A DNA stretch of 64,000 nt from Paramoeba atlantica (lineage: Eukaryota; Protista; Discosea). The notes under the pieces are model-generated. The model saw nothing but the letters and a program-made list of their open reading frames with translations. It was not told the origin of the DNA and searched no databases. The stretch lies in the NCBI GenBank assembly GCA_977017575.1, contig CDRNVI010000185.1, positions 123,557-187,556 on the forward strand, written 5' to 3'. Both the position numbers and the translations under genes were made by a program. This document shows, piece after piece, positions 1,673 through 33,800 of this stretch (its first letter is position 1; each line of letters opens with the position of its first letter).

Positions 1673-1674
1673 CA

Positions 1675-6420: not shown

Positions 6421-6541
6421 ATTTTCTTTTTTGGGCTCTTCGTTAAACGCGGCGGTAGTTTTCAACGCGAAGCGCGCAGCATAAGTGACTTCTAAGTTGA
6501 AAACAACCACCGCGTTTAACGAAGAGCCTAAAAAAGAAAAT
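6421..6541. mobile_element. fold-back mini-element (46-bp inverted repeat, 3 mismatches)
   Basis: attttcttttttgggctcttcgttaaacgcggcggtagttttcaac versus reverse complement of gttgaaaacaaccaccgcgtttaacgaagagcctaaaaaagaaaat. A degenerate right arm also lies at about 1508-1555. Confidence 0.7.
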
Positions 6542-6649
6542 CTTACTGGGAGATACAATGTATTGCTTGTGATTCAATGTACTTTTGTGTGATCCAACTA
6601 TCTGTTATTGCAGTGCTGATATTTTTTCTTACTTGTTCTTCATCAGAAT

Positions 6650-10965: not shown

Positions 10966-10977
10966 ATGTCCAAAACG

Positions 10978-11382: not shown

Positions 11383-11670
11383 CGTGATACCAGTATATTC
11401 GTGTATGACTTTGCCTCAATTGCACCTTCCTTAGTACATTATATAGTAGTACAAGTACGTTGGCTTTTGGCAAACGTTATAGACTACAATACGTGAAAAC
11501 TAACAATTGGTTACGAAAACCGAACTTCCCTTTGTGTATGGTCGATCCACTTTTTTGCCATTGAAAAGCCTAGAAACGCTTCGTTTACTCTTACCTTTGT
11601 TATTTCTCGTTGTCTCATTGTTTTCTGTGCACTCCTTGACACGGCAACTCTGCAGTGCTCTGCTGTAAAC

Positions 11671-14052
11671 ATGCGGAAGACAATATCTCGAGAGAATACT
11701 CCTATGCGCCGCACTCGTATTCCTGTCCTCTCTCATCTTGCGATATGCTTTGCCGTCTTTTCGATTCATTCGATCGGAGGTTCATCCTGCGAAAAGATTT
11801 CTAAGTACGAACTATCACCCGTTTCGTGGGTTCCTCCTTGGGCCGTTACAACCAGCGATCCGATTCGACGTAGACCGAAATTTCCTTCTGACAACCTTGA
11901 GGACGACAAGAGCTTTCAAACCCGGAGCGTGTCTTCCTCAGGCGCCTCAGGATACTCCAAAGCACGTAGCCCTCCTGCGGGACGCGAAAGCGCACAATCT
12001 GCTTCGTCCATACGAGCCGGGGCTCGACGAGCCGCTGCGGCTGAACGATCCCTTACCAATTCCCCTACTGAATCGGCTCTTGCGAAAGCCAAAGCGCTGC
12101 GACAAGAAATTCACAGCAGTCCCTCACGACAAACATCCCTAAATTCCAATCCAAGCCCAAAGACTGTGACAGCAAATCCGATTTCCAGCGCCCCCCTTGA
12201 GGGAAAAGGAAGTGGAACCAATTCACCAAATGATCCCCGTTCTCGCGCTTCGGGATCTTCCGCAAATGTACACGTTTCGCCTACCTTATTGGCGCAAGCC
12301 ACCCAAGCACCTCGAATGAATGCCCGCAGTCTTGGCTCGACCCCTACTCCATTGGCATTACCCCAAGACAGTCCTCACCCCTCTGGCCTCCCCTCGAGTC
12401 TAGCTACACAATTAGTGCAGCTACTCCGGCGGGACGTTAGTGGGTTAAACGCGTTTTTACGAACCTTTACGGTTGAACATTACGAAAAGGAAAACAGCGA
12501 GCCCAATCTGTCAGCGCCACCCCCGAAAAAAACAAAGCCTTTGCATCCCGAGGTCTCACGAAGTTATATTCACCCCCTAGCGTCATGGGAGGATCCGGTG
12601 CTGCGATGGGTACGGGAGGCGTTGGATTTAGAGGAGATGGGGGTGCAGAACGCAGCGGAAAAAGCACACTTGATTAACCCGACAGGCTCCGCTGGCGCGA
12701 CACTGTCCTCCCCTAATGATCCACGAATGGTATTGTTACACAGCGGGCAAAATGCGTTTGGCCGGCCGAGTGCGGCACATTCGGCACCCCATCCGATGCA
12801 TGGGGCTTCGTCGTTTCCCTCTTTTGGACAGTTTTCTCCCAAGAACAATACGCTCTCCTTTGCCTCTATGCCACAAGAACCATTGCCCCCGACTCATCGG
12901 CTGGAGATTCCGATTTTCGCTCCCAATCACGCCAAACGAGAAGAGACGCCTGTGGGACGATGGCTGGTTCGTGCGCAAATCCGGGCGCGAACGAGTCTCC
13001 CCCCAAGCACTCCCCATAAGAATCCGAATTCCATCAAATCCGGGCGCTCGCGAAGTGTCGAACGACGAGCGCATCCCCCAAAAGGAGAACGCCAACATGG
13101 GAGTTTCTCCTCATCGCGAACTACGCCTACAGGAAGTCGGCGACATCCTTCCGAGAGTGGAAGGCCTTCAAAAACCACAGGATCGACCAGTTTCTATGGA
13201 CCTTCGGGGGCAGGAAGTAGCCCCGTCCCGGGCAAAGAGGAGTACATTCTCACCCATGCCCAGCTCATTCCACAGGAACAGATTGCCTCATTGTACTCCC
13301 TCACCGTTGCGCGCATCAACCCCAACGAAGCCGCGCTAACGTCCCGTTTCGCCACACGTCGCGGGTGGACACTTCAGCGTTCGCCGTTGAATACACCAAG
13401 TGAGGATATTACCCATCACTGGGAGAAGGGGGAGGAAGCCGGGATGCCACAACATCACGCCCATAGCGGTACTGCGCAGCACACCACCGACAACGGCCAT
13501 TCCCCCACGACCTACCGTCGACGAAGCTCCAGCGAGTACGCCATGGGAAAAAACCCCTCCGACGCCCCTACCGGTCTAGTCGTGCTCTGGGTGCATCTCT
13601 CCTATGCCCTCGACCTCAGCGGGTCCTACCGACGTGCCATCTATGAACAACAACAGCGACGACGAGGCCATCAACCCCCCACCACCGGAACCACAAAAGA
13701 GATGATGAATGCCAGCGCCACCCTCTCCGCCCCCGGTACCCCCCCATGGCCTGCCTACCTCTCCCAACCTCATCCCCAATACGACCCCCCGCCCTCGGAA
13801 ACTCCCTCCCCCATCTGTACCCTCACGACCATGTCCGCCTTCCAAGCGGACGGGCCGGGTTCGATTCCCGGGTGGCGCATTTTTTTTTTTTCAAAATCCC
13901 TTCAAGGTCACCTGGCTCACAGCCACCCCTTCTCCTTTGCAAGAGCTCTTGATATCTGGTATCAGTTCCCTTTCGGTTTTTCTTGCTTCAAATGGAGATT
14001 CAAAAATTGTATCCAGATCATTTTTTTGGAAAAAGCTTGGAAAAACTCATAA
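11671..14052 (+). CDS. hypothetical Ser/Pro-rich protein (793 aa); the 3' end probably reads through the junction
   Basis: Long open frame with a hydrophobic N-terminal stretch. The last about 75 codons run through the tRNA-Gly fragment, its T-run and AT-rich DNA. Confidence 0.6.
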   Translation: MRKTISRENTPMRRTRIPVLSHLAICFAVFSIHSIGGSSCEKISKYELSPVSWVPPWAVTTSDPIRRRPKFPSDNLEDDKSFQTRSVSSSGASGYSKARSPPAGRESAQSASSIRAGARRAAAAERSLTNSPTESALAKAKALRQEIHSSPSRQTSLNSNPSPKTVTANPISSAPLEGKGSGTNSPNDPRSRASGSSANVHVSPTLLAQATQAPRMNARSLGSTPTPLALPQDSPHPSGLPSSLATQLVQLLRRDVSGLNAFLRTFTVEHYEKENSEPNLSAPPPKKTKPLHPEVSRSYIHPLASWEDPVLRWVREALDLEEMGVQNAAEKAHLINPTGSAGATLSSPNDPRMVLLHSGQNAFGRPSAAHSAPHPMHGASSFPSFGQFSPKNNTLSFASMPQEPLPPTHRLEIPIFAPNHAKREETPVGRWLVRAQIRARTSLPPSTPHKNPNSIKSGRSRSVERRAHPPKGERQHGSFSSSRTTPTGSRRHPSESGRPSKTTGSTSFYGPSGAGSSPVPGKEEYILTHAQLIPQEQIASLYSLTVARINPNEAALTSRFATRRGWTLQRSPLNTPSEDITHHWEKGEEAGMPQHHAHSGTAQHTTDNGHSPTTYRRRSSSEYAMGKNPSDAPTGLVVLWVHLSYALDLSGSYRRAIYEQQQRRRGHQPPTTGTTKEMMNASATLSAPGTPPWPAYLSQPHPQYDPPPSETPSPICTLTTMSAFQADGPGSIPGWRIFFFSKSLQGHLAHSHPFSFARALDIWYQFPFGFSCFKWRFKNCIQIIFLEKAWKNS
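13830..13879 (+). pseudogene. 5'-truncated tRNA-Gly(TCC)
   Basis: Anticodon arm TCCGC-CTTCCAA-GCGGA, T arm CCGGG-TTCGATT-CCCGG, 3' acceptor strand GTGGCGC-A and a T-run. No D arm or 5' acceptor strand upstream. Confidence 0.8.
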
Positions 14053-14652
14053 AAATTTGTAACACCCTTTTTAATCAGTGTCTCTTTTTTATTGATATTT
14101 TTTTGGGAGAAAAACACAGCCATTCCAGATACCACCCCAAATCAGGGTATATTCTTTTTTCTTTTTTTTTTTTCCCTTTTTTTTTTTTCCCCTTTTTTTT
14201 TTTTTCCCCTTTTTTTCTTTTTCCTTTCCTTTTTCCTTTCCTTTTTCCTTTCCTTTTCCCTTTCCCTTTCCCTTTCCCTTTCCCTTTCCCTTTCCCTTCC
14301 CTTTCCCTTTCCCTTCCCTTTCCCTTTTCTTTCCTTTCTTTTTCTCTAATCTTTCTTTTCTTCTTTCTTTTTCCCCCTCTCTTATTTCTTTTTTTTTTCC
14401 TTCTTCTTTGTTGCAATTCTTTTTTTTCTTTCTATCAGTCTTTTGAGATTCTCAATTGATAAAGTTTTGTCCAATCACAACCAGTATTTGTCAATTATTC
14501 AAGACAAGTTGTATTCTCTTGCTGTGCCTTGATCTTCTCTTTCAAATTGGATTTGATTTGTTTTTGTTTTTTATGTTTTCTTAATTTTTTAAAGTTGATA
14601 AAGTTTTTTTTGATTTTTTTTGATTTATCTTTTCTTTCAGCTCTTCTTTCAA

Positions 14653-14691
14653 TTGTGAACTGATCAAGTCCCAGTGGCCACTAAAAAAAAA
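14653..14691 (+). repeat. A-tailed motif copy (ttgtgaactgatcaagtcccagtggccact-A9)
   Basis: Similar to 53911-53972 and 56829-56883. Confidence 0.75.
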
Positions 14692-14710
14692 TCTTTTTTT
14701 TTAAACAAGT

Positions 14711-14773
14711 GGTTCTATAGCTGGCAGAGCACCACCCTAGTAAGGTGGAGAATCTGAAAGTCAAACTTGCTCC
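14711..14773 (+). pseudogene. degenerate tRNA-Thr(AGT)
   Basis: GGTTCTATAGCT..GGCAGAGCA-CCACC-CTAGTAA-GGTGG-AG aligns to tRNA-Thr(CGT) at 56903. The T arm is destroyed. Confidence 0.65.
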
Positions 14774-15261
14774 TCTTTATACTTGCAATTTGGAAAAGGG
14801 ACTTTGAAGTGCTCTGGTGGGAGAACACAAAAACTTTTGGTTGGGGAATCAAACAATATGAAGATGACACTGCTGTTGATAGGAAGGGGCCAACTTTTTT
14901 GTCAAACTTCCAAAGTTCCAAACTTTTCTGTTGTAGAGCATTGGATGGGTTGGTTGTGCTCAGGGATGACATTTTGTAATGGTTTCCCCTTGCTAAGTCA
15001 GTATCTTGTTGCTGGATCTTGAAAAATTACAGCTCCATTCCTCTACTAAAGATTAGGGCTCAAAAGGTGGTTTACAGTCCTGTCATCATCAGGCAAAACC
15101 ACTTCAGGAATTGTTCAAGCAATTTGAGAATGTTGAAGAGCATTTTATTTCAAGAGCCTGTGTTTAAAAGCACATAGGTTATCATAGAAACCAGTGATGA
15201 TATGATGGCTTTTCTGAGTTTGATGACTTCACAAAAAAACAGAGTTTGAACACGGACATTG

Positions 15262-15334
15262 GCTTCCGTGGCTCAGTCGGTAGAGCGTCAGTCTCATAAT
15301 CTGAAGGTCGTGAGTTCGATCCTCACCGGGAGCA
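15262..15334 (+). tRNA. tRNA-Met(CAT), elongator type
   Basis: Full cloverleaf GCTTCCG/CGGGAGC, anticodon arm TCAGT-CTCATAA-TCTGA, GTTCGATCC, downstream T-run. Confidence 0.95.
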
Positions 15335-16376
15335 CTTTTTTTTTTGTCTTTTGATTTTTTTTTTGAATCAGGGTGGAGTTTATTGACTTGTTTTCGATTT
15401 TTGACATTGAGAAAAGTTATGAAATTCATCAGGTTCAGTGAAAAGTACAAGTCAATGAAAACACAGCAACACAATCTTCATCCATTTTCTTTTTTCAATT
15501 TTTACAGGTTTGAAATCATGTAATGGTGGAACTCAGAGCAGAGAAGATATGATCTCACCCAGATACCCCATCTTCAACAAAAACAATTGGCAGCCCAGGA
15601 TGCAACACTCAAGGAACACATCAGACTACAATTGAAGGTTTAAAGACTCAAATTTCAAAAACTGATGAGCCAAAGCAGAATATCACTCTGTTTGACAACA
15701 AGACAAGGGAGCTCTACAAACCAGTTTCTTGGCTGATTCATGATGATGTGACACCAGCAGGAATGATCAAAGAACTTGATGAATAACAGGTGGAAATTTG
15801 TGTGAGGTTGCTTTCATGCATGAGGATATTCAAGAGCAGTTGAAAACCTGGCAAAAATCCCTGGGGAAAAAATGGTGCCCAAAATCCCAACAGACATCTG
15901 GCAGTACATACAGAAGGATGGTGAACTGAAGGCTGGGAGCAGTTGCGACTGAGGAGCATCTTCAGGCAATGTCCAACAACATCCTACATATCATGAGAGC
16001 CATCCCAGGTGCCAAGGAAGATAAGACTCAATCCGACCAATTGCTTAAAACATTGATTGCGCTCATAACAATGTATTCCTTGAGGATGTGTGTGTTGTAA
16101 TTACAAAATGTTGCTCACCAGAAACTCAACCTTTCACCTTTGGATTTTAAATCTCCACCAACTGTTGTCAGGAGAGAGGAGATAGCAAGAGCTCAATTGA
16201 GGAAGAAGTCTACAAGAGGAGTCAGAGAAGAGGATTGTGTGAAAGTGATGGGGCAGTCTGTTGCAACCACTTTGAAGCAAAGCCACCATTCAAGAAAAGA
16301 AGAAGGTTTGCGCACCAAACTGCTACCACCTTTGTTGATTGTGGAAATTCCAAAGGGAGACAGTCCCCTTTTTTTA

Positions 16377-17441
16377 GGGGTCTAAAATAAATGACTTGTA
16401 CTCTCTGAAGTGGAGAGTCAGAAAAGTCACTTTTTTGGTGATTGACTTGGGCAATCAAAAATAACTGGAGAGGGACAATAAGAATTAACTAATTTTTTAT
16501 GACAAGCCAGAGCAAAGTTGATCAAACAATTATGTTGGTCTTTATCTTCATAGAAGGGGCAAGAGAGAGCAGCAAAAGTCTGTTTACACCAACCATACGG
16601 TGACTCAACTTTTCCTCTTACAAATGCAATTGCTTCATTTTTCTCTTGATCCTCAGCACTCAATGAATGGGGAACTCTCTTTCCACGGATTATTCGAGGC
16701 CTTCCAGCGTTTGACTTGTTTGTGACCAACACCAACTTATCGAAAAATTTTGTTGCTGCTCGAAAGTGGTTGTCTGCAATGATGTGTGGTCCCAGAAAAG
16801 AGGTCATCAAGTCGATTCGCATAAAAAATAGTGATATCTCCATCATAATCTTTTGGTGAATGGATCCCACTAACCCATTCAGCCCCACCTTTTGCATTGT
16901 GAAGTGTCACCCACCACCAACCAGGAGCTTTAAGTTTGTGTGAGTACCATTTTGCCCTCCACTTCTTGCGAACTGTCTGTTGGGCCCTTTAATTTTAAAA
17001 TCAGATGAATCCATCCATAAACAGTCAAATTGGCATGGTGGTGGTCATTCAGTTCTTTGGGCCATTTCCACAAATGAAAGAAAGGGTGCTTGGGACCAAG
17101 ATTGTTTTTGCCCACTTTAGCAACTCGAAGCGAACAACTTGAACTGTTGTGTTGGATTGCTTTTTGGCCCATTGGGAGCCAATCGTGCACCTTTTTTCGG
17201 AGTTTGCCCATCCCAACCGCAAATAGATCCTTGTACATTACAAGATGATACACAGACACAGCAAAACCAGAAGGTCTCTGTTCACTCCAAAGCTTTGGTT
17301 TTTGAGATTCCAAAAAATTTAGAATCTCCTTCAAAGTCTCTTCTCCCAGCTTCTCTTTCACAGCAAATATGATATCTTTCTTTCTCAACCCTTCAACCCC
17401 CACCATTGGTGAAAGAGTACAACTCATTTTATTTAGCTCTC
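16377..17441 (-). mobile_element. compact IS5/ISL2EU-Harbinger-type DNA transposon (DDE_Tnp_4-like transposase, frameshifted)
   Basis: Reconstructed motifs LWMDSSDFKIKGP, WYSHKLK, IIADNHF, LSAEDQEKNEAIAFVRGKVESPYGWCKQTF. Imperfect TIRs ggggtctaaaataaatgacttgtactct / gagagctaaataaaatgagttgtactct with TTA and TAA flanks. Confidence 0.75.
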
Positions 17442-20330
17442 TAAATTAGGGGACTATCTCCCAAAGAAAATTGTCAATTATTTCATTACAGTGAATAGAG
17501 CATCTATTCTGTGGTCTCTCAAATAATCCTCAAAGAGTGTGTGGCTGTGTACAACAAAATTCCTCAATCTGGTTTTTTGACATCCTTGCACAGGACAATT
17601 TGGAGAGCAATAAAGGTGCAGGGTGTTTTGGAAACCCTGACCCCCCCCCCAAACAGTCTGTGTCTGGTTGGTGTTTTACATTGTGTCAATCCCAAACTTG
17701 TTTCCTTTGAATTTTGGTATCAGAAAAGAGGTCTCATATATCCATGGAAAAGGAAAGGAGGAAGCTCCAAGCTTTGAAGAACTTCAGAGTGATTACCAAC
17801 ACTTTGAGTGGAGAGTTATTGAGTCAAATGTGAAGGAACTTGGAGATGATCTGAAGCTCCATATTACCTTGCTGGATTCAATTAGTTGGGAGATGGTGAC
17901 TGAGGCACTGTGGACCCCCTCTTTATCCTAGATGGTTTTCGACAAGCACTTGGGGCAACTTGAAGAGGAGGAAGACGTTTTGGATGCCATGAGGTATTCG
18001 AAATTTGATACAAAGCGAAATTTTTGGATTTGGGGAAATGTGGTGGGAATTGGTCCCTTGTGATTTCCAACTTCCTTCTGGAATCCTGTTTTACCAATAA
18101 TGTGACTTGTCCACAAAGCGCCAAGAATCCCCAATCAAGTTTACCAAGCCTGTGTGAGAAGGTTAAGGCTTTGAACTGATACAGGCTCTCAATACAATGT
18201 TCAATGTGGCTGAAGTGCTCAATAACTCTGAAGAAGACAAGGAGAAACACAACAAGCCTTTGAATTTGAGTGTGTTCTTTGTGCCACTCTGTGGGGTCAC
18301 AAATAAAATTTTTATTCTTATTTCTCTCAACAAAACAATTTGATTTTAAACAACAAAAAAAGAGGAGTGGGGGGGGCAGGAACATCACCCACTCACTTGC
18401 TCTTTAAAATAATAAATTGATTTTTATTGAATCTAACAATTACTTTTTGAAAAGGCAACAATCCTTTTTTTTTTCCCCTGCCTCTCTCTCTCTTTTCTTT
18501 CTTGTCTCCACTTCAAATATGATTTTTTGGGGGGTCACCAAAATACATTCAAAAAGAGAAAAAAATTAAAAACAGCAATTTGAAAAGTTTGAAATGACAA
18601 AAAAAGAAAGAAAACCTCAGAACAATCTTTGGAAGGTTGAGACAAAAATCCAAAAAGACAAAAAAAAAGGAAAGGAAAGAAAGAAAAACAAAAGAAACAA
18701 AAGAAACAAAAGAAACAAAAGAAACAAAAGAAACAAAAGAAACAAAAGAAACAAACCATGAAAAGTCAAAAAAAAAACCAAAGGAAAAAGAGGAGATCCT
18801 CAACAACCCAAACACAAACTTTTACCAAACAAAGTCTCTCTTTCTTTCTCTCTCTCTTCTCTCTTCTCTTCCTCCTTTTCACAAAACAAAACAAAAAAGC
18901 GTTGAGCCGCTGATTTAGATCCCTTAATTTTTCGGGAAAGAGAAAGGGCGAAAAGATGCTCTTTGTCAGCTTGATAATTGGTTGTTTTTTTTTTTCGTTT
19001 TTTCTTCCTCTTCTTCTCTCCTCTTCACCCTCTTCAGTTTTCTTCTTCCGACCTCTTCAGTTCCCCCTCCCTCTCTTTTTTTCCTCTTTCATTCTCTTTT
19101 CCACTCAATGTGACCTCCATTGAGGGAGCTTCCAAACTGACTTGAACAACTGCCTTTTTCTGTGGGGTGGGTGATGGGGGGAGAGGGAGTAAAAGGGGGG
19201 AATGCAAAGGGAGAGGGGAGAGGGGGGGGGGTTAAAAGGGATGGTGATAGAATCAACCACAAATATCATGATGATAATTTTTTGAGGAGGGGTGGGGGGG
19301 GGGGATGTTTCATGGGAGGGAGAGGGGAGAGGGGCATTCTGGCTGATCAAGAAAAGAGGTTTTTTTCTCCTTCTCTTCTCTTTTTCCTTTTTCTCCCTTT
19401 TTTTGTTTTTTTGAGTTTTCCTTTTTTTTCTTTTCTTGGGTTTTCTTTTTTTCTTTTTTCTCCATCTGTTTTTTTTCTCCTTTTTTCTTTTCTTTCTTTT
19501 GTCTTTCCCTTTTTTTTTCTTGTTTTTTTTTTCTTTTTTTTCTCACTGCTGTTTTCCCTTTGTCTTTTCCCTCTCTTGAGGGTAATTCTTTTTTTGGTTC
19601 CTCTCTTTTCTTTCCTTTTTGTTCGTGAGATTGGAAGATTTCATCTGGGAGGACAATGTTTTTGTGTTTTTTTCATTTGGATTTTTCATCCTCTCTGGAT
19701 GTGAATCTGAAAATTTGAACCCAGAGAATATGAAACAAAATAACAAATACCCACAATCACAATGGAAAACAAAAAATGGAAGAGCAAGAAGGGGGGGAAG
19801 GAGAAGAAAAAAAGAGAAGAAAAAAAAGAAAAAAAAGGTCTTCAGCACTCAGGATTCGAATGTGATCACCCACCATTCTCCTAACCAAGCCCACAGCAGT
19901 TCTGATGGGATCAGGTGCTTTCAATTGGGTATGACTGAAGACACTTTCTCTTCTTTTTTTTCTCCTTTTTATCAATCCAATTATCCAAAATCAACAAAAA
20001 AAGAAAAGAGAAGAGAGAAGAGAAAGAGTTCAACTCTCTTTTCTCAGAATAAAAAACTTGTTTTAATCTGAAATAAAAGGAGCAGGACTGAAAGGAAAAA
20101 CATAAAATGGAAAACGAAAAACAGAAAACAAAAAAACAAATCAAGGAAAGAGAGAGAGTAATGGTCTTGAAGAAGAAAGAAGTAAAAAAGGAAAAGAAAA
20201 GGATGTGAAAGAAAAAACAGAAAGAAAGAGATACAACCACCAAAAGAAAAGAGAAAAATAACTGAGAAAAAGAGAAAAAGAGAGAAGGAGAAAAAACCAC
20301 AACCCACAAAAAAAAAAACTGAAACAGGAA

Positions 20331-21212
20331 ATGATGGACCTCTATTTTGGGTCCGGATGGTTTTTTTTTTGTTGGCTCACGAAAGAGGGAGGGGAAGAGG
20401 AGAGGGAGGAGAGGGAGGAAGCGAAAAGGTTCCAGAGAGAGAGAGTGTGTGTGTTCAGTTGTGAAGAAAAAACAATATTGGCCCAAAGGAATTCCAGGGG
20501 AAGAGATTGTTGCACACCTCAAGGAGAAGGAACCTGGTTATGTGTGAAAGTGAAGAAAGGATCTCTGAGAGGTTATAAATTCTATGTGGAGGCTTTCCAA
20601 GATGTTCATCACTCTTCTATAATGATTAATACCTGGGGAACTTCTTTTCCCACTGGTTGCCCACGAAATCGCAAGCTTGAAGGCCAAAGACTCTCCCTGT
20701 GATATACTCAGCCTCTTGACTTTTACTATCAAACCAGGCATTGTGTGGATGATCACAACCAACTGAGGCAAGGTTCTCTCTCCTTGGAGAGTTCCTGGAA
20801 GACCAAAAAATGGGTCCACAGGCAGTTTGCTTTCATTCTTGTAGTTGTGGAAGTCAATGCCTTCCTCATATTTCAGCACTTTTTCCCTCAAGCCAAAGAG
20901 CTCTCCTTTGCAGAATTTCGTTTTGAGGTTGCCCAAGGTCTACTCTCTCAGAATCATCCCTTGGATGAAGGCTATAACCTGCGAATACCACTCCCAACTC
21001 ATGTAGAACATCATCTGATGATCAAGCCCAACTTTGCTGGAGTTTGGTGAAATGGTAATTGGACTGAAGCCAGACAAGAGTACCAGAAGAGTAGATGCAA
21101 TGGGACAAATTGTACAAAGAAAGTTCGAACCTATTGCTCCTGTGATCAAACACTCATTTTTTGTTCAGGTTGCTTTGCTGACCATATGAGCAGGCACATG
21201 ACTGAGGACTAA
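20331..21212 (+). mobile_element. piggyBac-like transposase relic (3' half)
   Basis: VKKKQYWPKGIPGEEI, YYQTRHCVDDHNQLRQGSLSLESSWKTKKWVHRQFAFILVVVEVNAF and a C-terminal Cys cluster RCNGTNCTKKVRTYCSC...FCSGCFADH. Contains stops and frameshifts. Confidence 0.8.
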
Positions 21213-21949
21213 TTAGTCCTTTTGAAAAATGATGTTTTTTTTTTTTGGTGACTCAATTTTTTTTTTCAAAAAACAATATTTGGACAAATATTTCTTGATA
21301 TTCTTGTTTAAAAGATCTTTATTAAAAAGTTTATCAAAAAAAATCTCCCCTCCACCCACCAGTGGCTTCAAAAAAAGAGTCAAAAATAGGAGCCTAATTA
21401 GTCTTTTGGCCTGGAAGGAACCCGATTTTCTGGAGAGTTTAACAATTTTATTTGTTTTTTTTCTGGTTTTTCTGGTTTTTTCTTTTTTTCTGGTTTTTCC
21501 TTTTCTTTTGGAAGATGGTGAAACATTTCTCCCAGAGTCTCACAGTTTTTGTGCTGTGTGGTTCACATATCTCAGATCAATCTTTTTCTTTGGTACAAAA
21601 AGGGTGGAGATGCTGCTGTTGGTGAAGTCTCCTCTTTGTCCTGTTCCTTTGCATACTTCTTGAGTACTTTCTCTGGCCTTCTTTTCCATTGTTTATCCCT
21701 CTTGATTATCCTTGGTTTTGGTCTCTTCCCTTTTTGGAGTAGAGTTTCTCAAGCCAACTCCAAAACCCCCCCCCTTATTTATTTTGATCTCAATCTTCCA
21801 TCTTCTTTTCTTTCTGATTGCAATCTGAACCAATTGGGCCAATTCAACATTCAAATAGGTTCTTGGCTGCTTCCTCTTAACTGCCCAAAAGGTGGCTTGA
21901 CAAAAGGTCTCAATATCTAGACCCCCCCTTGCATCCCCTGAGGATCTCA

Positions 21950-23366
21950 GTGACCCTTATCAAGGGGGGAAATATTCATCCTTTTGGCCAACTGAGCTGA
22001 TTGGCATTACTAGTTTGCTCCTCTTGGGTTCATATTTCTTCATCACTTTCTTTGAAATCTCCTTGAACCTCCTCATTTGATAACATCCACCTCTCAAGAT
22101 CCTTGAATTTCCTAAAGTTGGTGTTAGAGAATCATTTTCTTCTGTTCTTGTTGATAGGATTGAAGATTTCTCCTAAATCAAATTTCACTTTCTCATCCTT
22201 TCCATTCTCATGTGTCTCTCTCTCTCTTTTATTTCTTTCTCAAGTCCTAAATTCTCTTTCTCCATTTCCCCCTATTCCCCTCATTAATTCCACAAGCTGG
22301 TCTTCCACACCATGCTTGCATGAATTTGATCATGGTGACTACAATGATGAGGTACAAGAGTGCTTTTTATGTGCAGAAAGTGCTTAGATTCTTTGATCAA
22401 GGATATCTTTTGAGATATTGCATTCCTTCTGATGATGTGTGCGCTTTTTGTCCATCTCCTGTGCACCCCATTTTGCCCCTCATCCACTCTTGTCTTACCC
22501 CTTCCTTCTTCTTTGCCTTCTTCTCCTCTGGTTTTTAATTTACTTTAAAGATGTCAGATCATGCAAGATGAACTTGTGGACACAGGATTGGAAATTCAAA
22601 ATTGATTATTCTTTGCTTCTATTTTTGATTCTGGTAATATTCCATTCAAGAGAAGATTTCTCATTTGTTTACAAAATGAATCAACCATTTGTTCAATTCA
22701 GGTCTATTGGTTTGTCTCCTCTCCAATATCTCTGCTTGTCCTTACCCCTCTCCTTAGGAGTTTGTTCATCAGTTATTCAAACTAAGTCTTGCTCAGATAA
22801 AGCATTAATCTTTTGGGTGACTCTTTTGTGCCCTACATTTGGTTTTGGCATGGGTGTGTGCACTCAAAACAAGTTGACCCATGCAACACCTCAGGCCCAA
22901 AATGATGACTGTTTGTTGAGGGAGCAAGTTGACTCATGTTTTCTGATGACTCTTGTCTGGTTTGAGCAGGGGATCAAAGTTTCAAAATAAATCTCTTTCC
23001 AGATCTCCAATGATGAGAGTGAAACTGTCATCTTGCTCATGATGAACAGTAACAGTTGAATCATTTTTGTTTGTCTAATTTTCTTTTGAGTTCATCAAGG
23101 TCCTTACAATTCTCAATCATTTCATTGAGTTGTGTCAGCATTTGCTTCTTTGCTGCTTGGAGGTCGATTTCCTCTTCTCTTTTCCTTTTGGGTGGTGGAG
23201 GGGTTTGATCAGATTGAGCAAACCACTGGACCAGGTTCATGCAATTACTTGAGAACATTTCAAAAGCTATATGTTGCCATAAGTTGAGATGAGGGAGGAC
23301 CAAGTCTTGTGTCCCTGGCCAATTCTTTTCACTTTTAAAAGTTTTCCAATGTTCAGCCAAAGACAT
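21950..23366 (-). pseudogene. decayed coding sequence of unknown family (probable TE relic)
   Basis: One minus frame across about 22560-23050 reads as protein-like with scattered TGA/TAA stops. Adjacent ORF 23061-23366. Very few CpG. Confidence 0.35.
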
Positions 23367-23548
23367 TGAAGATTACTGTGATCAGTGTTTTCTTCATAAG
23401 CTTACATCAGGTTGCATTGACCCAAACAATGAAGAAGAAGAAGAAGAAGAACTTGAATCAGAGTTTCTTCAAACAATCAGTGTCAAGTCAAGATCACTGA
23501 GAATACATCCAGGAATGAGAGTCTCTGGTGAAAGAGTTTCTGTTTGGC

Positions 23549-23805
23549 CTTTTCTTTCAAATCAAACAATCCAATCATCAAAAGAATAATAAACACACAC
23601 TTTTTTTTCTTTTTCTTTTTCTTTTTTGTTCCATTTCTTCAACCTTCACCATCTTCATTCAACCAAAAAACAAACAAATCAGAAAAGAGACCACAAGAGT
23701 GAACATATGGATATAACATTAGATTTTTTTTGAAGGCTCAAAAGGAATATTTGAAGTCACTTCAATCCTAAAAACACTATGATTGCAAGTGCAGCTTAAG
23801 CCCAC
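23549..23805 (+). repeat. dispersed about 260-bp repeat, copy 1
   Basis: Aligns over its length to 55740-56004. Confidence 0.85.
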
Positions 23806-24123
23806 TCTTATGTAAAGCATTAAACCAACAGTTTTCACTCCAAAACCTGATGGAGGTTGAAACTTGAACAAGCCCATTTCAGGAATTTTAAGAGGATGGA
23901 ACTTTCCTTTGATAATTTCAAGAAAAAATATCACTCTAGTCTCCCCTCAACCAATTATATGATGTTCATTTCCAAAAAAATATGGTTTCTTTCTGAATAA
24001 ACATTCAACTAGAAGTCAATTTGTAGAACCACACCACTATACACTCATTCAGACAGACCTGACAGATCTGTTAACTTGGAGCAAAGATGGTCTTTATTTT
24101 TTTGTTAAAAGCAACATGTAATC

Positions 24124-26548
24124 ATGGATGGGGTGATCTCTCATGATGATAATGTGGTTAAAAAAGCAATTAAGGATTTTTGGGAGGGTCTTCTCAGCAC
24201 AGAAAGACCATATAACAAAGATTCTCTTGATGAACTGATTGCTGACCACCAACCTCATTTCCTCCCAGTTGAGAAACATAATGTGGACAGGAAGAAAGTC
24301 AATAAACTACTTCAGAGAACCAACAACACCAGCACAGGACCTGATGGTATTCCCTTCTCTTTGTATAAGGCAACACAAGAGAAGTACTTTGATATGTGGG
24401 TAAAACTAATTCAACAAGCAGGTGAGGTTATGGATTTTCAGGAGATCAATTGATGAAGCAGTAAAATCAGTATATGACTCTTTTTACAAAGCTTTGGCAG
24501 AGGGGAAAGATGTGACTCTCCTCCAAACAGACTTTTGCAAGGCATATGATTATGTGAATTGTGATGCACTCCTTTATATTCTCAAAGGTTTGAACACCCC
24601 CCTCAAGCAATCTATGTTGTTGAGAAAGTCCTTTGTGAATATGTAACCTGGCTGCCAAATATTGGTGGATCTAAGAGGGCAGGCACCAAAGAATCAATTC
24701 AAAGATGGACAGGAGTTAGACAAGGATGCTCAATCTCCCCTCTATTGTTTGTGATTGTGTTTGACATCTTCCTTGTGAGTTTGAAGAAGAAACACAACCC
24801 CCAAGATCTGCCAGGCTTTATGGATGATTTGAGGATGGTGCTTTAGTGAGCTGAAACCATCAATTCTCTCACTCCAACCTTTAAGAAATATGAAGAAGTG
24901 ACTGGAGCTAAACTGAACTTTAATAAGTGCTTTGACCTCTCAACTGAGTCTTACAAACCAGTAGGCCCCTGGTCTGAGATGGCAAGACCCAATTACTGTG
25001 GTGATGAAACTGGAAGTGAGATTGAGTAAATGGTTATTTCCTCTCAAAGATTGGAAAAAGGTGGTTGTGCACAGGGTGCTAGTTTAGCCCCAGGGGAATT
25101 CAGTGAAAGATGAAGCTCAAAAAGGAGAAGAATTATGAACTTGTAGAGTTCAGATATTAGCTGAAGAAGAGAAAGAGAAAGAAACTCACTTGGGAGTTTT
25201 AGAATAAAAAAAGTGCTTGAAGACCATTCTTGAGTCCATTGTTTTCTGTGTGTCAGAGTGACTGTGTGTTTGGTGTGGAGTCAGGAGGTCATTCACTGTG
25301 GTCTAAAAGATGAAGAAAGTTGAAACAGCAATTAAAAAGAGAGGTGGGAATTTTTGCTCAAGAGTGAAGATGGTCAATACCTATCTAACTCCATGTATGG
25401 AATACTTAGTGAGATTCAAGTTGATCCTAAAATCTGTCACCTCTTTGATGTGGAAATCCATCTGCTTAGCCCTGGGTGCCATGCCAACACTAAAACCTCT
25501 GTTCTTACTTTATGCTATCCCCTTTGGACTCAAATCCTCAACTACACCACTCCATTGTTTTTAATTAGGCTCTTTTCACCTCTTGTCCACCAATAAGGAG
25601 TGACTATCAGAGTCCTCTCTCCATTGGAGCTATGCAGAAGGATGCTTTCATTGCAGCCCAAAGCCTTTCTTCCAAAGTTGTGTTTGGCCAGGCCACTTGT
25701 GTTGTATATACCAATATGTCTCAAATAATTTCAATTGAAATCAAAGACTTGTATGTGGGGGAAGGAAGAGCTGAGTGTGTGGTGTACAACTTGACTCATG
25801 CAATTAGACCTCAGCTCAAGAGGAATTTACTTAAATTTCTAATAAAAGAGCTATCTACAAGAAACAAGTTGTCTCACTTCTCAAACTAAGATTCAAGTTG
25901 TTGCTTAGCTGCCACTGAGAAAAGGAGTTATGATTTCATCTATTGGAAAAATGTTCTGTGGCTGAGGGTCTTCTTTAAGCAAGGGGAAGGAAATGTATTT
26001 TGCTGAAAGTACTCAACTGGCAAGAAACTAAGAGTGTGTGGCCTTGTCTCAAAGTATCTTACCAGGCAAGAAACCTCTGTGGTGAGTGCTGCCCTGCTGA
26101 GTTTGTAGCTCACAGTGTGTGCAAAAGGAACTAAATCAGCCTAATATACTAAAAAAATTTTTAGAAAAATCTTAAGAAAGAATAAAATCCTCCTTTGGCC
26201 TCTAAGGACTCAAACCAAGAAAGAATTAAAGAAAAGAAAAGTTTTAAATTCAAAGGTTTTTTAATGTTTTATAATGGTTCAGGACATACAAACCCTCATT
26301 TAGAGGGTGTAGGTTTTGCAGTTTTCAGGAAAGAAAGAGAGATATGTGGTGGGTTTGAAACCATTTCTTTTGGTTTTAACAATATTGGTGAATTTACAGG
26401 CTGTTTGAGAGGGATACAAAATGTTAAATCAATGATAAAAGAGATTATGATTGTTGAAGATTGTATAATTCTTACCAAGATAATGTTCAAAACCCATACT
26501 AGAAAAAATTATACTTTAAATGAATTACTTTGTGAAATTACAAGTTAA
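24124..26548 (+). mobile_element. decayed L1/Tx1-like non-LTR retrotransposon: RT plus C-terminal RNase H
   Basis: STGPDGIP, DFCKAYDYV, GVRQGCSISPLLF (about 24712), FMDD (24817), GAKLNFNK, thumb RVKMVNTYL. RNase H FYNGSGHTNP..GVGF..NNIGEFTG..EDC at about 26250-26470. Confidence 0.85.
25066..25297 (+). mobile_element. 232-bp solo-LTR-like insertion, copy A, TSD GTGGT
   Basis: Exact 5-bp direct repeats at 25061-25065 and 25298-25302. Ends TGTGCAC...TTCACT, internal AATAAA. 225/232 identical to the reverse complement of 59709-59940. Confidence 0.9.
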
Positions 26549-26599
26549 GGCTTGAAGGTTTGTAACACTATAAGTAAAACAACTATTTAAGATAAGAAA

Positions 26600-27300
26600 A
26601 GCTTTGGTATTATCTTTGAACTCTAAAAATCAACATCTTATAATCACTTTTAGAACAAAAATTTTATCAATTCAATAAGAAAATAACTTATTATTGATAT
26701 TTGGTGATGAAAATGATATTACATAACACCACTCATTCACTGAGAGATTATACATTACCTCTAAGTTTGAAACAAAGGATATTGTTTTGATAATTGTAAA
26801 AATTGAAAGATTCCATCCAATAATACCAACTATGAGCATTAAAGTGATATAGAATTCATTTCAAGAGGAACAATATCTATGAGAGCAATTATGTATTAAA
26901 ACAACTTTGAGTTTTTTAGTATCTTTTTTGTAATTAAAATCAGTTTCATTAATATTCATGATCAATTGAAAGTGAGCAGCATCAATCTTTTCTTGCAATT
27001 CTTTTACATTTTGTTTCAGCTTTTCTTCAAACAAACTGCATCTCTCTGCCTCAAGTGGCTCTAAATCAATAAGAAAAAGTTGTTTTTCACTCTAAACAAA
27101 GAAATAAATCCAAGTGAAAAAGATTGCTTTTAAGAAAGTGGTATTAATCCAATCTTTGAGGGTGGTTTGGATCAATGAAACTTGGTTTCCATTACATTTT
27201 TACATATATTTAACAATTTTATCAATTTGAAAAGGTTCAATCTTTGTAAAGTGTTTTCACATCTTTGATTTCACTCTAAAAAGCAGGTTACCCCAGGTTT
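26600..27300 (-). mobile_element. heavily decayed pogo/Fot1-like (DDE_1) transposase
   Basis: LIMNINETDF (from NxDETGF), YITLMLIVGIIG..IFTIIK and NINNKVIFLLN resemble DDE_1 blocks. Many stops. Confidence 0.5.
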
Positions 27301-27758
27301 TGGAAAGTTTTCTGTTTTGTTGTTAGTCAATTTGAAAAAAACAACTCACATTTGTAAAAGTTATTATTTATTCTTTTTCATTTGGACTATTAAGAATTAA
27401 TTTTTTATAAAAACAATAATATTACTTTATTAAAGTTTAACAAAGAGTTAACTTTTCTTATTCAAAGGTTTTAGAAAAAAAAATGTATTCATGAACTAGA
27501 AGTTTTAAATTTTACAATGAAATTACTTCAACAAGAAGAGCAAAAGATTTTTTTTTTTTTATAAAAGAAGATAATAGATTCTTGTATATGAGTTTAGGTG
27601 AAATGAAGCAATTAAACAAAAACCAACAAAAACAAACAAAAAACTAAAATCAATTTCAGAAACAAAATTAATTTTCTTTATTTGGCTAAAAAAAAAATAT
27701 TTTTCTCAATTTGATTTTTATATTTTTGAAAAAAATAAGATTTTAAATATTCAAAAAA

Positions 27759-28808
27759 GAGAATCAGAAAATAAATTAAGAAATTACATTCAATATGGAG
27801 ACATAATTAAGAAATTGAAATTACAAAAAATTAATATAAAAAAAAGAAAATAAAAAATAAATCAAATACATCAATTCAAAACAATTAAGAAATTTGATTG
27901 AATCAACTTAAAAAATATCATAGATCTGAAATATAAATTCTAAAAATATCAGAGAATCAGAAAATAAATTAAGGAATTGCATTCAATATGGAGACATAAT
28001 TAAGAAATTGAAATTACAAAAAAATAATATGAAAAAAATGAAATAAAAAATAAATCAAATACATCAATTCAAAACAATTAAGAAATTTTATTGAACCAAC
28101 TTAAAAAATATCACAGATCTGAAATATAAGTTCTAAAAATATCAGAGAATCAGAAAATAAATTAAGAAATTACATTCAATATGAAGACATAATTAAGAAA
28201 TTGAAATTACAAAAAATTAATATAAAAAAAAGAAAATAAAAAATAAATCAAATACATCAATTCAAAACAATTAAGAAATTTGATTGAATCAACTTAAAAA
28301 ATATCATAGATCTGAAATATAAATTCTAAAAATATCAGAGAATCAGAAAATAAATTAAGGAATTGCATTCAATATGGAGACATAATTAAGAAATTGAAAT
28401 TACAAAAAAATAATATGAAAAAAATGAAATAAAAAATAAATCAAATACATCAATTCAAAACAATTAAGAAATTTTATTGAACCAACTTAAAAAATATCAT
28501 AGATCTGAAAAATAAGTTCTAAAAATATCAGAGAATCAGAAAATAAATTAAAGAATTGCATTCAATATAGAAACATAATTAAGAAATTGAAATTACAAAA
28601 AATTAATGTAAAAAAAAGAAAATAAAAAATAAATCAAATACATCAATTCAAAACAATTAAGAAATTTGATTGAACCAACTTAAAAAATATTTTTAAAATA
28701 AAAAATAAATTTAAAAAATATTACAAAATCAGAAAATAAATTAAAACATTTTATTCAATATAGAAATATAATTAAGAAATTGAAATTACAAAAAAATAAT
28801 ATAAAAAA
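27759..28808. repeat. AT-rich tandem satellite, 193-bp unit, about 5.4 copies
   Basis: The anchor gaatcagaaaataaatt recurs at 27761, 27954, 28147, 28340, 28533 and (variant) 28726. Confidence 0.95.
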
Positions 28809-28899
28809 AATTACTTTTAATCATTTCTTATTGATTCTCTATTTCAAATATCCAAGTAAAAGAGGGCAAACAACTCCACACAAACATTTCATAATGATG

Positions 28900-30100
28900 T
28901 AAGTTTTGATAACAGACCAAACTATTGTATGAATAAACTAAAAACTGATTTGAGTAGAGAGGTGTGAGGTAGTGAATAAAATTATATTGTACTGCTCAAA
29001 TAGAATGCTTATACTTGTTTAATAAAGTTGATGCAAGTTTTTCAAGTTGATACAGGAAGTGTGAAAAAGAGTGAATATTTTTTACTCTTGTTGGAGCCTT
29101 CATTGATAAGTCAGATTTACCACCACAATCAAAACTACCATTATCAATAACTTATTCAACTCAAAAAGACAGATTTTTGATTAGTGCCTTTCAAAAAGCT
29201 TCTTTAACAAGATCACATTTATAGGCATGGCAACCAAAAATCTGAAAGACTTTTCTAGCCATTTGATTCAATTCTTCAATTGCTGCTGCTAGGTTTGAAG
29301 GAGTATGATCCCCCATTACAGATCCAAAGGAAGAGAGGTTCAAAGAATCTAAAAAGGACTAGACTTCAGGGAATTTCTTTGCCAGATTTTGTAGACCATT
29401 TAAAAGAGAAAAATTATTCTTTGCAATTGACAAGGCATCATGATCAACTGCTTCTTGAATACTCAAATTAACATGCCCACCTTCACCCTGGATACCAACA
29501 GAAAGAAGATTTCATCTTTGTGATGAATTTCCATCATGAGAGAAAGTTGGGGATTTTAGTTCTTGGATCAGTAGTGCTTCTAATTTTAATTGAATGCTGT
29601 CTTCACAACAAATCTGTTGGATTGTGGTTGATGATGAAAGAGTAAGGTCTTTTTCTAAAAAAATTCAGAAAAATTCTCAAATTGCAGAAGAAATATTTCT
29701 CTGGACCATCTCAAAGGAAAAAAGAGAACAAATCAAATTGTGAACTTTTTGAGAAAATTGCAATCTACCAGCACCAAGTTCAAGAGTTCTTACCTGCTCT
29801 TTCATTTCTTCTTTTTCTTTTTCATTGTTCTCCTTGTCCTCTTTAGTTTTCTTTGCAAGAGCAAGGAGGTTATGAAATGAAATTTCCTTAGAAAGATCAA
29901 TCAAATGATGAACTTTTATCAACAAAAAGATCAAGATTATTAAATGCTTTGATGTGTGGTGGGCAGCAAATAAAATAATCACAAGCAGGTTGGCTTTCCT
30001 TGTTTCAATCATGACCACTTCATAAACCACCAGAAAATTCCCCACCACTTCCACAAAAGCAGATTGCCCAACTTTATCAAAGAATTTGGGGGTCAATAAA
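28900..30100 (-). mobile_element. older, eroded paralog of the hAT-like transposase at 57.5-61.4 kb
   Basis: QFSQKVHNLICSL..MVQRNISSAI, HDGNSS, SFLDSLNLSSFGSVMGDHT, GCHAYK and SHFLYQLEK match QFTQPVQNLVCSY..MSQRRIPLAI, HDGASS, SFVESLSLSSFSSIISDHT, GCHAHK and THFLYVLSK. Confidence 0.8.
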
Positions 30101-30849
30101 GAAAAACAACCATTTTCATTCAAAACAAAATGTTCAACAACAATTCACAATTTTCAGTGTTTCAATCATTGGTTCCAGGAGGTGAGTCCTTCTCTAATAA
30201 TTTTTCAATCTAAAGCCTTTTCTAATTGTCTTCACCATTTCTCCTCAAACAAGGAAGGAACAGCAATGAATGGTCCAGCATAAGTCATTGCTTTGTGGTT
30301 TGGTCCTTGACAATATTCACACTCAGCTTGCACTACTTTCAAGAATCACTTCTTTATGGGTTTCATGAGTCTTTTTTCAAAAAAAAAAAAGATCAGTTTC
30401 AAGAAGAGGGTCTTTGAATTCAAAATCCAAAAGAATTTTGGGGATTGAAAGAAATACCTGCCTTAATCAGAGTTGTACAACAATTTTTTTGAGCAATTTC
30501 AAGGGCCAGAACAATTCAACTCCAAAACAAAAGAACAAAAAAAGAAAAAAATCTTTGTCATGGCACTACCTGCACAACTTTGGGCATGTTTGCACTCTAG
30601 AAAGAGAGAAAGAGTGGTGGTGAGAAAGAGAGAAAGGAGAGACAAAAGAAAAACAAAGAATTCAAAAATCCCAAAAGAGAGAAGAAGAATGAAAGAGAAA
30701 GAAAAGAAAAACAAAAACAAAGTGAAAAAGACAAAAAGACAAAAAAAAAAAGGAGGGAAGGGAGGAAAGGAAAAAAAAAAAAGAGAGATTTCAAAAGAAA
30801 AAGAAAAAAAAAAAAGAGAAAAAAAAAAGACTTTTTCCCCCTTGAAAAA

Positions 30850-33800
30850 CAACAAACAACAAACCACAAACCAACCACACCACCAATCACTTCCCACTTC
30901 ATTCGAATCAATACTCACTCTCCCCTCTTCCTCTCAAACCCCACCTTCAAAAGCTCTGCTCCCCACCCCTGATGTAACAACAGATTTTCAAGATTGCCAT
31001 GGCCATGCCTCTCGATCTTGGGCACCCTCAAACCAGATAGCACAGAAAACTTTCGGTTCCCAAAACTTCACTTGGGCCAAGTGGAGAAAGAGTCACAGCC
31101 AAGAAGGAGAGCAAGAGAAAGAAAAAGAAGGAAAAAAAGAAGAGGTCAGAGAAAGAGAAAAGGAAGGAAAAAGACAAAGAGAACCCCAAAAAAGCGAGAG
31201 AGCAGGAGCAGAAACAATGAAGAAAGAGAGAAAAGAAAGGAAGAGAATGAAAAGAAAAAGAAAATAGAGGAGGAAAAAAAACAGAAAGGAAAAAGAATGG
31301 AAAAAAAGAGGAAGAAAGAGAAAAATCAGAAAAAGAAAAGAATGAAAGAAACAGAAAAGAAAGAGAAAAAGAACTAAATCGAATGGACAATCCTCAGGCC
31401 CAAAAGACAACTTCACATCCTCCAAAATTCCTTGGCAATTGCTTGTACCAAAGATGCAGAGGCCAACACCAAAAAGTAATAGTCTCCCGATGTGAGAAGT
31501 GCCTCCTTACATTCTGCTCCTTTTCCCACCACAGGAAGTCACAAACTCTCTGTCACCCTCTTCCTCCTCCCCCCCCCCAACCTCTCCCATCCCTAACCTC
31601 CCCTCCCTGCTCTCCCTCCAATCCCTCCTCCCACCCTCCCTCCCCAATTCCCTCCCACCCTCCCTCCCCACTCCCCTCCCCCACTCCCTATCCCTCTCTG
31701 CATCTCAATTTTAATCCTGATCTCGATCCCTCCAGCACCCCTCCCCCTTCATGTAACAACCCTGAATGCAATGGTAAAGCAGAAGTTGGCTCCCACATCT
31801 CCTGTAACCACTGCCAAATGCATTATTGTTCAACACAATGCCACAACAGCACAGAAAACCATCCCATCACCCCTTTTCCTCCTCCCCCATCTCACCCCTC
31901 ACCTCACACACCTCTCCACCCTCCTTCCCATCCACCTCATTTGCCCCCCCCCCAAGCCCACCTCACCACCTCCCTTCCCACACCCCCTCTCACTCCCCTC
32001 TCACTCCCCCTCCCCAACAACTTTCCCACCGCCCTTCTTCTCATGGCCCACCTTCTTTTCAACAAACTCCTCCCTCCCTCTCCCTTATCCTTGAACTCTT
32101 CGAAAATGGCTCCTATGAAGATATAGTCTTAACTGTCCCCCGCTTCAGAAACTTGGATCGCGCAAGAACAAGCTCCCTCCAAACATGCAGAGCTCGTGAC
32201 CTCCTTGGACTTGGAATCAACCACTTCTTTGATGGCCAACACCATTCTCTCCTCAGATTTCAAAAATGCTCAACAAACAAAGCAAGATGAGATATCGTCC
32301 CCCTTCTCTTGAATCGCAAGTAGCACGGGGAGAATAGCCTTTCTCCTACAGTTCTGGCAACACTGGAAACCTGCACCACAGCCTCCCAAAATCTCGCTCA
32401 CAAATGTCAAAGACAACTTCTTTTTCATCTGTGGGGATGGATCTGTTGCTACCAACCCAAATGGATGGTGCGTTGGAAGCTCATCACTCTGTGTCATTCG
32501 TGAGAACAAGGAAATTGTCCACTCTCTCATCCATTCTCCCAAGCCCTGAAAACCATATTAACTGGAGAAACCACGAGAACAACTCTTTGGCAGATAGGAT
32601 CACAAGTTTAGCAGTACACAGAGGATGCCCTGACAACACCTGGAGAATCACACCCATCCTCAACCCAGACCCACAACACATCCAACAACTCTTCTTCAAT
32701 CATGGGCGCTCTACAACCCTTCCTCATGGAAGCAAAGAAGAGGCTGCAATGAACTTCATCCTCTCTCTTGAAGGAGACTCCTTCTCAAAACACATCCCCC
32801 TCCGCTACATGGACTCAGTACCACTCTGCCTTCGTGATACAGTCATCAAAACTTTTTGTGCTGTATGACACCTCTTTCATAAGATACCCCAACTCCTGAT
32901 CCTCCTCCCAAAATGGATCATTGGCTGCCTTAGAAGGAGTACTCGAGGAATGAAAGAAGTGAAATCTTGATGCACCATGGTGCGAAATTTTGAGTGGGAG
33001 AGACTCCACAAAAAACTCGAGGGCAAGCTCAGCAAACTCAAGCAAAAGAGGAGGCAGAAGTCCACCAAGAAAACCAAGGCAGACCAGATTATTGAAGAGG
33101 TCAGAAAAGGACATCTCTCCAAAGCTGCAAGGAAGCTTCAATCCAAGAGTGGATTCAGGGATCTCTCAGTCCCAGAAAATCGTGAAACTGCGAAGAACCT
33201 CTACCCAAGATCTGAGCAGGCGTGGACTCCACCAGATGGAGAAGAAATTCCTGACTGGAAACCAGCAATCCTTGAACAAGATGAGTTTCAGTCCTTTGAC
33301 TCACTTGATCTGGCCCTTCGGAGACTTCCAAAAGGCCGCACACCAGGGCTCTCAGGAATGTCTTATGAGTTTGTCACACTCCTATGCACAGACCGAGAAC
33401 TCTGCTCAACCCTCAAAGAATTGACTGTCTTAATCACCAACCAAAAACTCAATGAAACCATACACAACATCATGGCAACCTCTCTCTTCATTCCTCTGGC
33501 AAAAGGGTCCAGCAAGGAGATCCCCTCGGGACAATTTTCTTTTGTCTGGGATTTCATGGAATCCTCAATCCAATCTTTCAGAAGGTTGATGCTCCACCGA
33601 ATGCACTTCTTCTTCTCCTCTTTGTCGATGATATATTTGTTTGTGGGAGCCCAGTTGCCATTGCAGAAATCACCACTCAGATCCAGAGTGTCCTCCCAAA
33701 TGCCAACCTCAAACTTGGCACAGAAAGGGGCAAAATGGTCTGTTTCTCTCCCGAAGCGCCCAGGAGCAATGACCTCAAAAATCTTGGCATTGGGAAGGCG

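Follow-up and report, generated by a model that had tools for sequence, protein, structure and literature searches.

The ribosomal DNA (rDNA) intergenic spacer of one of two organisms in a mixed assembly, probably an amoeba, has lost nearly all of its CpG dinucleotides through one-way C-to-T change on both strands, whereas the functional genes embedded in it have kept theirs. The spacer lies in a 64,000-nt stretch of the Paramoeba atlantica assembly GCA_977017575.1 (contig CDRNVI010000185.1, here C185, forward-strand positions 123,557 to 187,556), which is called the window and numbered from its first letter. A preliminary description of the interval 14400-30500 had read it as transposon-derived DNA eroded by CpG-focused C>T and G>A change, owed either to cytosine methylation or to a mutator like repeat-induced point mutation (RIP) in fungi. 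The directional, CpG-focused change and its likeness to the deamination of 5-methylcytosine (5mC) hold up; transposons as the specific target and the fungal form of RIP do not. With slightly better than even confidence, we attribute the erosion to 5mC deamination in the silent rDNA spacer and repeat DNA of a second organism in the assembly, as judged from sequence.

The CpG deficit is steep and uneven. The observed/expected ratio (o/e) of CpG, followed in 1-kb steps along the window with GpC o/e as comparison, is 0.7-1.3 over 1-14 kb and 0.00-0.28 over 14-31 kb, where GpC o/e is 0.66-0.8; it then lies at 0.1-0.75 from 31 to 46.5 kb, at ~1 in the rRNA genes, and at 0.1-0.8 from there to the window end. 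The interval 14400-30500 holds 51 CpG against ~500 expected (o/e 0.10) at a GpC o/e of 0.75, with TpG and CpA in excess alongside the deficit (o/e 1.2-1.5). Only 2 CpG occur in the 21.5-23.5 kb stretch that the preliminary description had singled out as nearly devoid of them. Between the CpGs at 23165 and 30904 lies a gap of 7,739 bp, and this CpG-free stretch of 7.7 kb (23166-30903) would be expected from its base composition to hold 188 (Poisson P ~1e-67); it contains 153 GpC. Purine/pyrimidine tracts explain part of the deficit, lowering GpC, ApT, ApC, GpT, and TpA as well, yet CpG falls far below all of these. Over the whole spacer (13880-46590), CpG o/e is 0.22 and GpC o/e is 0.66.

The sequences that escape are genes with a function. 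Rfam and ARAGORN recover a complete eukaryotic rRNA operon and seven tRNA genes in the window. The operon (46591-53403, plus strand; by Rfam, small-subunit [SSU] gene 46591-48696, 5.8S 48901-49056, large-subunit [LSU] gene 49363-53403) has a CpG o/e of 0.92, and the tRNA genes keep 2-9 CpG each against 0-6 per 600 bp of flank; tRNA and rRNA genes stand at ~1 overall. The tRNA-Met gene (15262-15335, plus strand) keeps 6 CpG between CpG-free flanks, the tRNA-Lys(CUU) gene (42793-42865, plus strand) keeps 8, and 7 are still present in the 3' half of a tRNA-Gly(UCC) gene at the spacer start (13831-13879, plus strand). An intact polyubiquitin gene of four units (37084-38103, minus strand) has a CpG o/e of 0.75 in its coding sequence, including 14 CpG that span codon boundaries; the transition/transversion ratio (Ts/Tv) among its repeats is ~3, against 28 in the spacer of the same rDNA unit. 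The internal transcribed spacers ITS1 and ITS2 have 14% GC and 0 and 1 CpG, respectively, and CpG o/e upstream of the SSU gene is 0.16-0.35. Protection of the rRNA genes is thus not regional; their CpG is maintained by selection on the RNA.

The eroded domain can be delimited by comparison with other contigs. On C172, C161, and C149, an intact tRNA-Gly(UCC) gene (L031:1907-1979) comes after the LSU 3' end, and after that a copy of 13831-21901 that is 99.99-100% identical. This shared order of LSU, tRNA-Gly, and spacer makes 13831-53604 one rDNA unit of ~39.8 kb, and 13831-64000 comprises that unit, made up of a 33-kb spacer and the rRNA genes, and then the decayed beginning of the next one. 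The spacer contains dead transposons, satellites, tRNA genes, and the polyubiquitin gene. Non-transposon spacer and a tRNA pseudogene are eroded along with the transposon remnants; the domain is the whole ~33-kb rDNA spacer and not specifically transposons.

Copies of the same sequence record the direction of change. A 232-bp non-autonomous element occurs as a decayed copy with 0 CpG at 25066-25297 (plus strand) and as a near-consensus copy with 3 CpG at 59709-59940 (minus strand). Their 7 differences are all transitions with T or A in the first copy, three at CpG and four elsewhere, just as the preliminary description had it. The genome holds at least 22 copies of this element, and C or G is the majority state at the differing sites among the 22 full copies compared; the copy at 25066-25297 is therefore derived and the direction is C>T. 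Measured against the family majority, it carries 6 C>T or G>A changes. The rDNA-flank duplicate reported to differ at its CpG proves to be a dead copy of tRNA-Gly(UCC) (53672-53731, plus strand). In its recognisable part, 7/7 CpG of the intact gene, which on three other contigs comes after the LSU gene, have been lost, becoming 4 CA, 1 TG, and 2 TA. An array of 11-bp palindrome-like units, each with three pyrimidine-purine steps, had likewise been described as mutated at CpG, and the steps are now mostly TG or CA: the nine units that match TYRACYRTYRA, the only matches in the window, have 4 CG, 12 TG, 11 CA, and 0 TA. The array is sited at 55162-55460, outside the 14400-30500 interval to which it had been assigned.

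A fuller spectrum comes from C144, C182, C143, and C177, whose diverged spacer copies are 96-98% identical to the window. When the window serves as outgroup, the lineage of C144 and C182 shows 48 C>T, 7 T>C, and 2 transversions, and C143 shows 42 C>T, 23 T>C, and 5 transversions. Polarised C>T changes amount to 0.19 and 0.09 per CpG site in the two lineages, against ~0.014 at other cytosines (odds ratios 16 and 7; Fisher P 6e-10 and 5e-4), which bears out the expected context bias between repeat copies. A star-tree comparison of three lineages over 3.2 kb already reduced to 0-2 CpG gives 78 C>T, 7 T>C, and 3 transversions (n=88), and C>T is ~19 times as frequent per site as T>C (P 2e-26). Recent C>T in this CpG-depleted DNA runs at 1.3-3.9% per site in all trinucleotide contexts, with a mild TCA/TCC preference; rates by 5' neighbour are 0.014-0.026, and those by 3' neighbour are 0.023 for A, 0.025 for C, and 0.017 for T. 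The preliminary description was right that changes also fall outside CpG, where most of the recent ones lie. C>T and G>A are randomly interleaved (runs tests P 0.11-0.80, except for one of 0.011 where tracts abound). Change thus comes first at CpG without being limited to it, and it affects both strands with no strand-coordinated bursts. In the 3' part of the LSU gene, the changes between units are mixed and no polarity can be assigned.

The assembly contains two eukaryotes, a fact that bears on every comparison made across it. A pattern built from the two universal SSU anchors of the window was run over the assembly and recovered two SSU types whose sequences between the anchors cannot be aligned. 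One occurs in 13 copies on C26, C59, C136, and C76, forming on C76 a tandem array of ~11-kb units; the other, the window's type, occurs in 37 copies on C137-C240. The start of helix 44 in the former resembles that of kinetoplastids, a likeness that serves as a lead only. Ubiquitin units on C137 and the contigs above it are 99-100% identical to the window protein, and those on C44 and C66 are 92-93% identical. The 232-bp element and a 572-bp element are confined to C137 and above, while a 0.9-kb element represented at 5640-6545 (>50 near-full copies, 88-95% identical, ~1600 candidate matches) is found on contigs up to C103 only. A blastn comparison of 104 kb from one genome with 257 kb from the other returned 0 matches that would indicate shared repeats, and tblastn between the two genomes returned only a 36% match over 67 aa. 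CpG o/e in 500-bp segments has a median of 1.07 in the first genome (n=195, minimum ~0.5) and 0.18 in the second (n=306). Matches to a housekeeping set (NSUN, cytidine/dCMP deaminases, UDG, TRM11, JBP1, and JBP2) fall 32/32 on contigs up to C81 and 0 on C137 and above.

The traits of the first genome match those published for Perkinsela, which has no flagellum, no introns, hundreds of spliced leader (SL) gene fragments, and 47% G+C (PMC5601477). Its open reading frames (ORFs) are long and uninterrupted, paraflagellar-rod genes were not found in it by a search run without positive control, and the 0.9-kb element is probably derived from an SL-RNA gene. Positions 1-13830 of the window belong to this Perkinsela-like kinetoplastid and have a CpG o/e of 1.02 (651 CpG against 641 expected). 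The second genome is probably that of its amoeba host, the simplest identity for the partner of a Perkinsela-like organism. The kinetoplastid-type genome also encodes a JBP1 orthologue, with a Tet_JBP and a JBP1 J-DNA-binding domain (E 6e-55; PDB 2xse 1.5e-41), and a JBP2 orthologue, with Tet_JBP and SNF2. The loci are intact on contigs of that type (L035, C3:216687-220160; L036, C30; L037, C39:573202-576660; L038, C40), so base J is probably made there. A link between JBP1, JBP2, or base J and the decay was considered and dropped, as these genes are on contigs of the other organism and their target base is thymine.

The two genomes meet in the window at 13830/13831 (C185 position 137386/137387). 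Positions 6790-13830 are 100% identical to C98, and 5640-13830 are colinear with C67 at 99-100%; both contigs lose their match exactly at 13830, rDNA-type contigs begin to match at 13831, and C185 alone spans the junction. It cuts a 793-aa ORF and falls in the middle of the tRNA-Gly gene. Since genes of the first genome otherwise occur in contig pairs, the left arm of C185 is a third copy. The junction is very probably an assembly chimera; the alternative is a real transfer of >100 kb of endosymbiont DNA to a place beside the host rDNA. Chimera or not, the sharpness of the CpG boundary stems from two separate histories, not from precise silencing. Because the left 13.8 kb is the DNA of a different organism, it is no within-genome control, and the contrast between genes and repeats drawn in the preliminary description is partly one between organisms: it stands for the rRNA, tRNA, and polyubiquitin genes, which keep their CpG, and falls for the left 13.8 kb. 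Allelic pairs from the gene zone, once used as a baseline (Ts/Tv 1.3, no CpG excess), were withdrawn for representing the kinetoplastid genome only.

Under the explanation by 5mC deamination, silent spacer and repeat chromatin would carry cytosine-5 methylation, dense at CpG and lighter elsewhere. 5mC would deaminate spontaneously to T, a product to which uracil repair would be blind. All unselected DNA of the rDNA unit (spacer, dead transposons, satellites, and tRNA pseudogene) is undergoing C-to-T conversion on both strands, at CpG 7-16 times faster than at other cytosines, which has left almost no CpG and is lowering G+C; changes in the rRNA, tRNA, and polyubiquitin genes are purged by selection, and their CpG is thereby kept. 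In Acanthamoeba and Naegleria, 5mC is reported to be confined to transposons (PMC12695648). The decay resembles that attributed to 5mC in vertebrates, plants, many fungi, and these two amoebae in its CpG deficit with TpG and CpA excess, its much faster CpG transitions, its equal strands, and its sparing of functional genes. It differs in extremity (o/e 0 over 7.7 kb), in the dominance of recent non-CpG C>T, and in a domain that is a 33-kb rDNA spacer.

Several observations weigh against this explanation. Most recent changes lie at non-CpG cytosines in a nearly flat context, so methylation of CpG only is insufficient, and the non-CpG component calls for methylation outside CpG or for a second process. 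We infer both the methylation of the spacer and the enzyme responsible, as well as any aim at repeats as opposed to all non-coding DNA, the comparison having covered DNA of the rDNA unit. Six-frame domain searches of the whole 45.7-Mb assembly, several of them without positive control, recovered no C5-methyltransferase (PF00145, TIGR00675) and no SRA domain, MBD domain, or CDCA7 zinc finger. These negatives count for little because none of the 32 housekeeping matches falls on contigs of the CpG-poor organism; a control family, NSUN (PF01189), was well recovered, with domains complete from end to end, in the first genome. The gene space of the second organism is essentially absent, which makes enzyme negatives uninformative for it, and the search for a DNA methyltransferase suggested in the preliminary description thus came back empty from an assembly that lacks this organism's housekeeping genes too.

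One alternative is a methylation-independent cytosine mutator. Such a mutator, a deaminase or RIP-like activity on repeated or silent DNA with CpG as its preferred site, is an unlikely source of the erosion, even though C>T at cytosines outside CpG, in all contexts, makes up 78/88 of the recent changes in CpG-depleted DNA and no DNMT was found in the assembly. RIP in fungi, which depends on RID or DIM-2, shares the one-way C>T on both strands, the AT-rich drift, and the killing of transposons. It prefers CpA, giving TpA, and leaves a TpA/ApT index of at least 0.89 and a (CpA+TpG)/(ApC+GpT) index of at most 1.03; in 14400-30500 these indices are 0.59 and 1.60, with neither a CpA preference nor a TpA excess, and the organism is not a fungus. 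The sequence 13831-21901 moreover exists as unmutated duplicates, its four 8-kb copies being 99.99-100% identical, although collapse in assembly might contribute to that figure. Editing of retroelements by AID/APOBEC enzymes shares C>T and G>A transitions in the DNA of mobile elements, but the spacer has neither the strand-coordinated clusters typical of APOBEC and of single RIP rounds nor a strong TpC, CpC, or WRC motif, and DNA other than retroelements is also hit, after insertion. Neither APOBEC_N nor LmjF365940-type deaminase domains, nor a RID/DIM-2-type methyltransferase homologue, were found in the assembly, where the missing gene space of the second organism again leaves the searches uninformative either way. 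Hypermutation of basidiomycete transposons is reportedly targeted at TpCpG; the spacer shows no 5' T requirement, has a large non-CpG component, and belongs to a different lineage. The trait held in common with that system is C-to-T hypermutation in transposable elements, which one account terms RIP or RIP-like (PMC3318451). A mutator that is independent of methyltransferase, works in all contexts on silent rDNA spacers and dead transposons of the second organism, probably an amoebozoan, with CpG as its fastest target, and would amount to a RIP-like defence outside fungi is more doubtful still.

A GC-to-AT transition bias acting genome-wide, with or without global CpG methylation and not aimed at repeats, is also improbable. 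Every unconstrained part of the unit has been hit, including ITS1/ITS2 and non-transposon spacer, escape is limited to selected genes, and the comparison drew on rDNA-unit and repeat DNA. Against such a bias, some transposon pieces on the same contigs keep a CpG o/e of 0.8-1.4. These pieces fit age-dependent decay and show that the process is not yet at equilibrium. The low Ts/Tv of the polyubiquitin repeats argues in the same direction, as does base composition: the host of the Paramoeba-Perkinsela pair has 43% G+C (PMC5601477) against 18-35% in the spacer, a comparison that assumes the organism's identity. An artefact is very improbable, be it mis-assembly or systematic errors that long-read base calling and consensus make at modified cytosines. 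Modified bases do bias nanopore consensus, and the contig is probably chimeric at 13830/13831; yet the CpG-free 7.7 kb, the dead tRNA copies, and the decayed arrays are fixed across several contigs at 96-100% identity, the differences between units fit a consistent tree, and miscalls at methylated CpG would not yield non-CpG changes.

The decay is a process of an already known type, and the spacer is a further instance of it. If 5mC is indeed the cause, the spacer would record, naturally and very cleanly, how methylation drives decay in an amoeba-type genome. The CpG-stripped 33 kb holds genes of Pol I, Pol II, and Pol III that keep their CpG, and this arrangement, together with an unusually large non-CpG component, makes it a good test case. 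The mixture of two eukaryotes and the probably chimeric contig mean that contrasts between gene zones and repeat zones in this assembly need to be rechecked contig by contig. A methylation footprint with no methyltransferase to go with it is here most likely the outcome of looking among the genes of the wrong organism.

Three proposed identifications were rejected. The preliminary description had placed a hAT-like transposase with two internal TGA stops in the window, but the ORFs in 57479-61390 gave no match in Pfam or among PDB sequences; the hAT identity was dropped, and internal stops cannot be defined there because no family match supports hAT. The supposed element of 3.9 kb has two copies only, here and on C143, which are 100% identical, and its sole multi-copy part is an internal piece, the 572-bp non-autonomous element (58477-59048; ~35 copies, 81-97% identical). 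An extra cytidine-deaminase family dissolved when 16 weak PF00383 matches turned out to be retrotransposon RNase H on kinetoplastid contigs. The sole PF01555 match, a candidate N4/N6 DNA methyltransferase, proved to be a tRNA methyltransferase like TRM11, with the motif DPPY.

Further features were recorded in both genomes. On the kinetoplastid-type side of the window, a 928-aa ORF at 8179-10965 carries an EST1 DNA/RNA-binding domain, and 11671-14052 is the 793-aa ORF whose end crosses the junction, proline-rich, 55-58% G+C, and without a family match. The 0.9-kb element is CpG-normal and forms tandem arrays on C21 and C32. A multi-copy retrotransposon (L045-L060, on C2, C12, C13, C19, C22, C39, C45, C46, C75, and others) has copies 99-100% identical with a CpG o/e of 1.0-1.2, on contigs of the kinetoplastid type. 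The array on C76 (~1.5-100 kb) is regular, with rDNA units of 10.9-11.2 kb, whereas the units of the other organism are patchworks of ~40 kb. Within the CpG-poor spacer, 16427-16897 (minus strand) retains part of a DDE transposase of the PIF/Harbinger type (DDE_Tnp_4, E 7e-6). A 193-bp satellite (27758-28810; 5.5 copies, 92% matches, 18-22% G+C) sits in the middle of the CpG-free stretch and is the most AT-rich part, presumably the most decayed. Some of the ~40 SSU genes that share the window's type are 100% identical and others as little as 97%; helix 44 shows G/A variants, and some rDNA units may themselves be decaying. The spacer polyubiquitin gene encodes ubiquitin with S19, Q24, A25, and Q28, and it is 99-100% identical in >100 units from ~40 rDNA units despite the C>T pressure around it.

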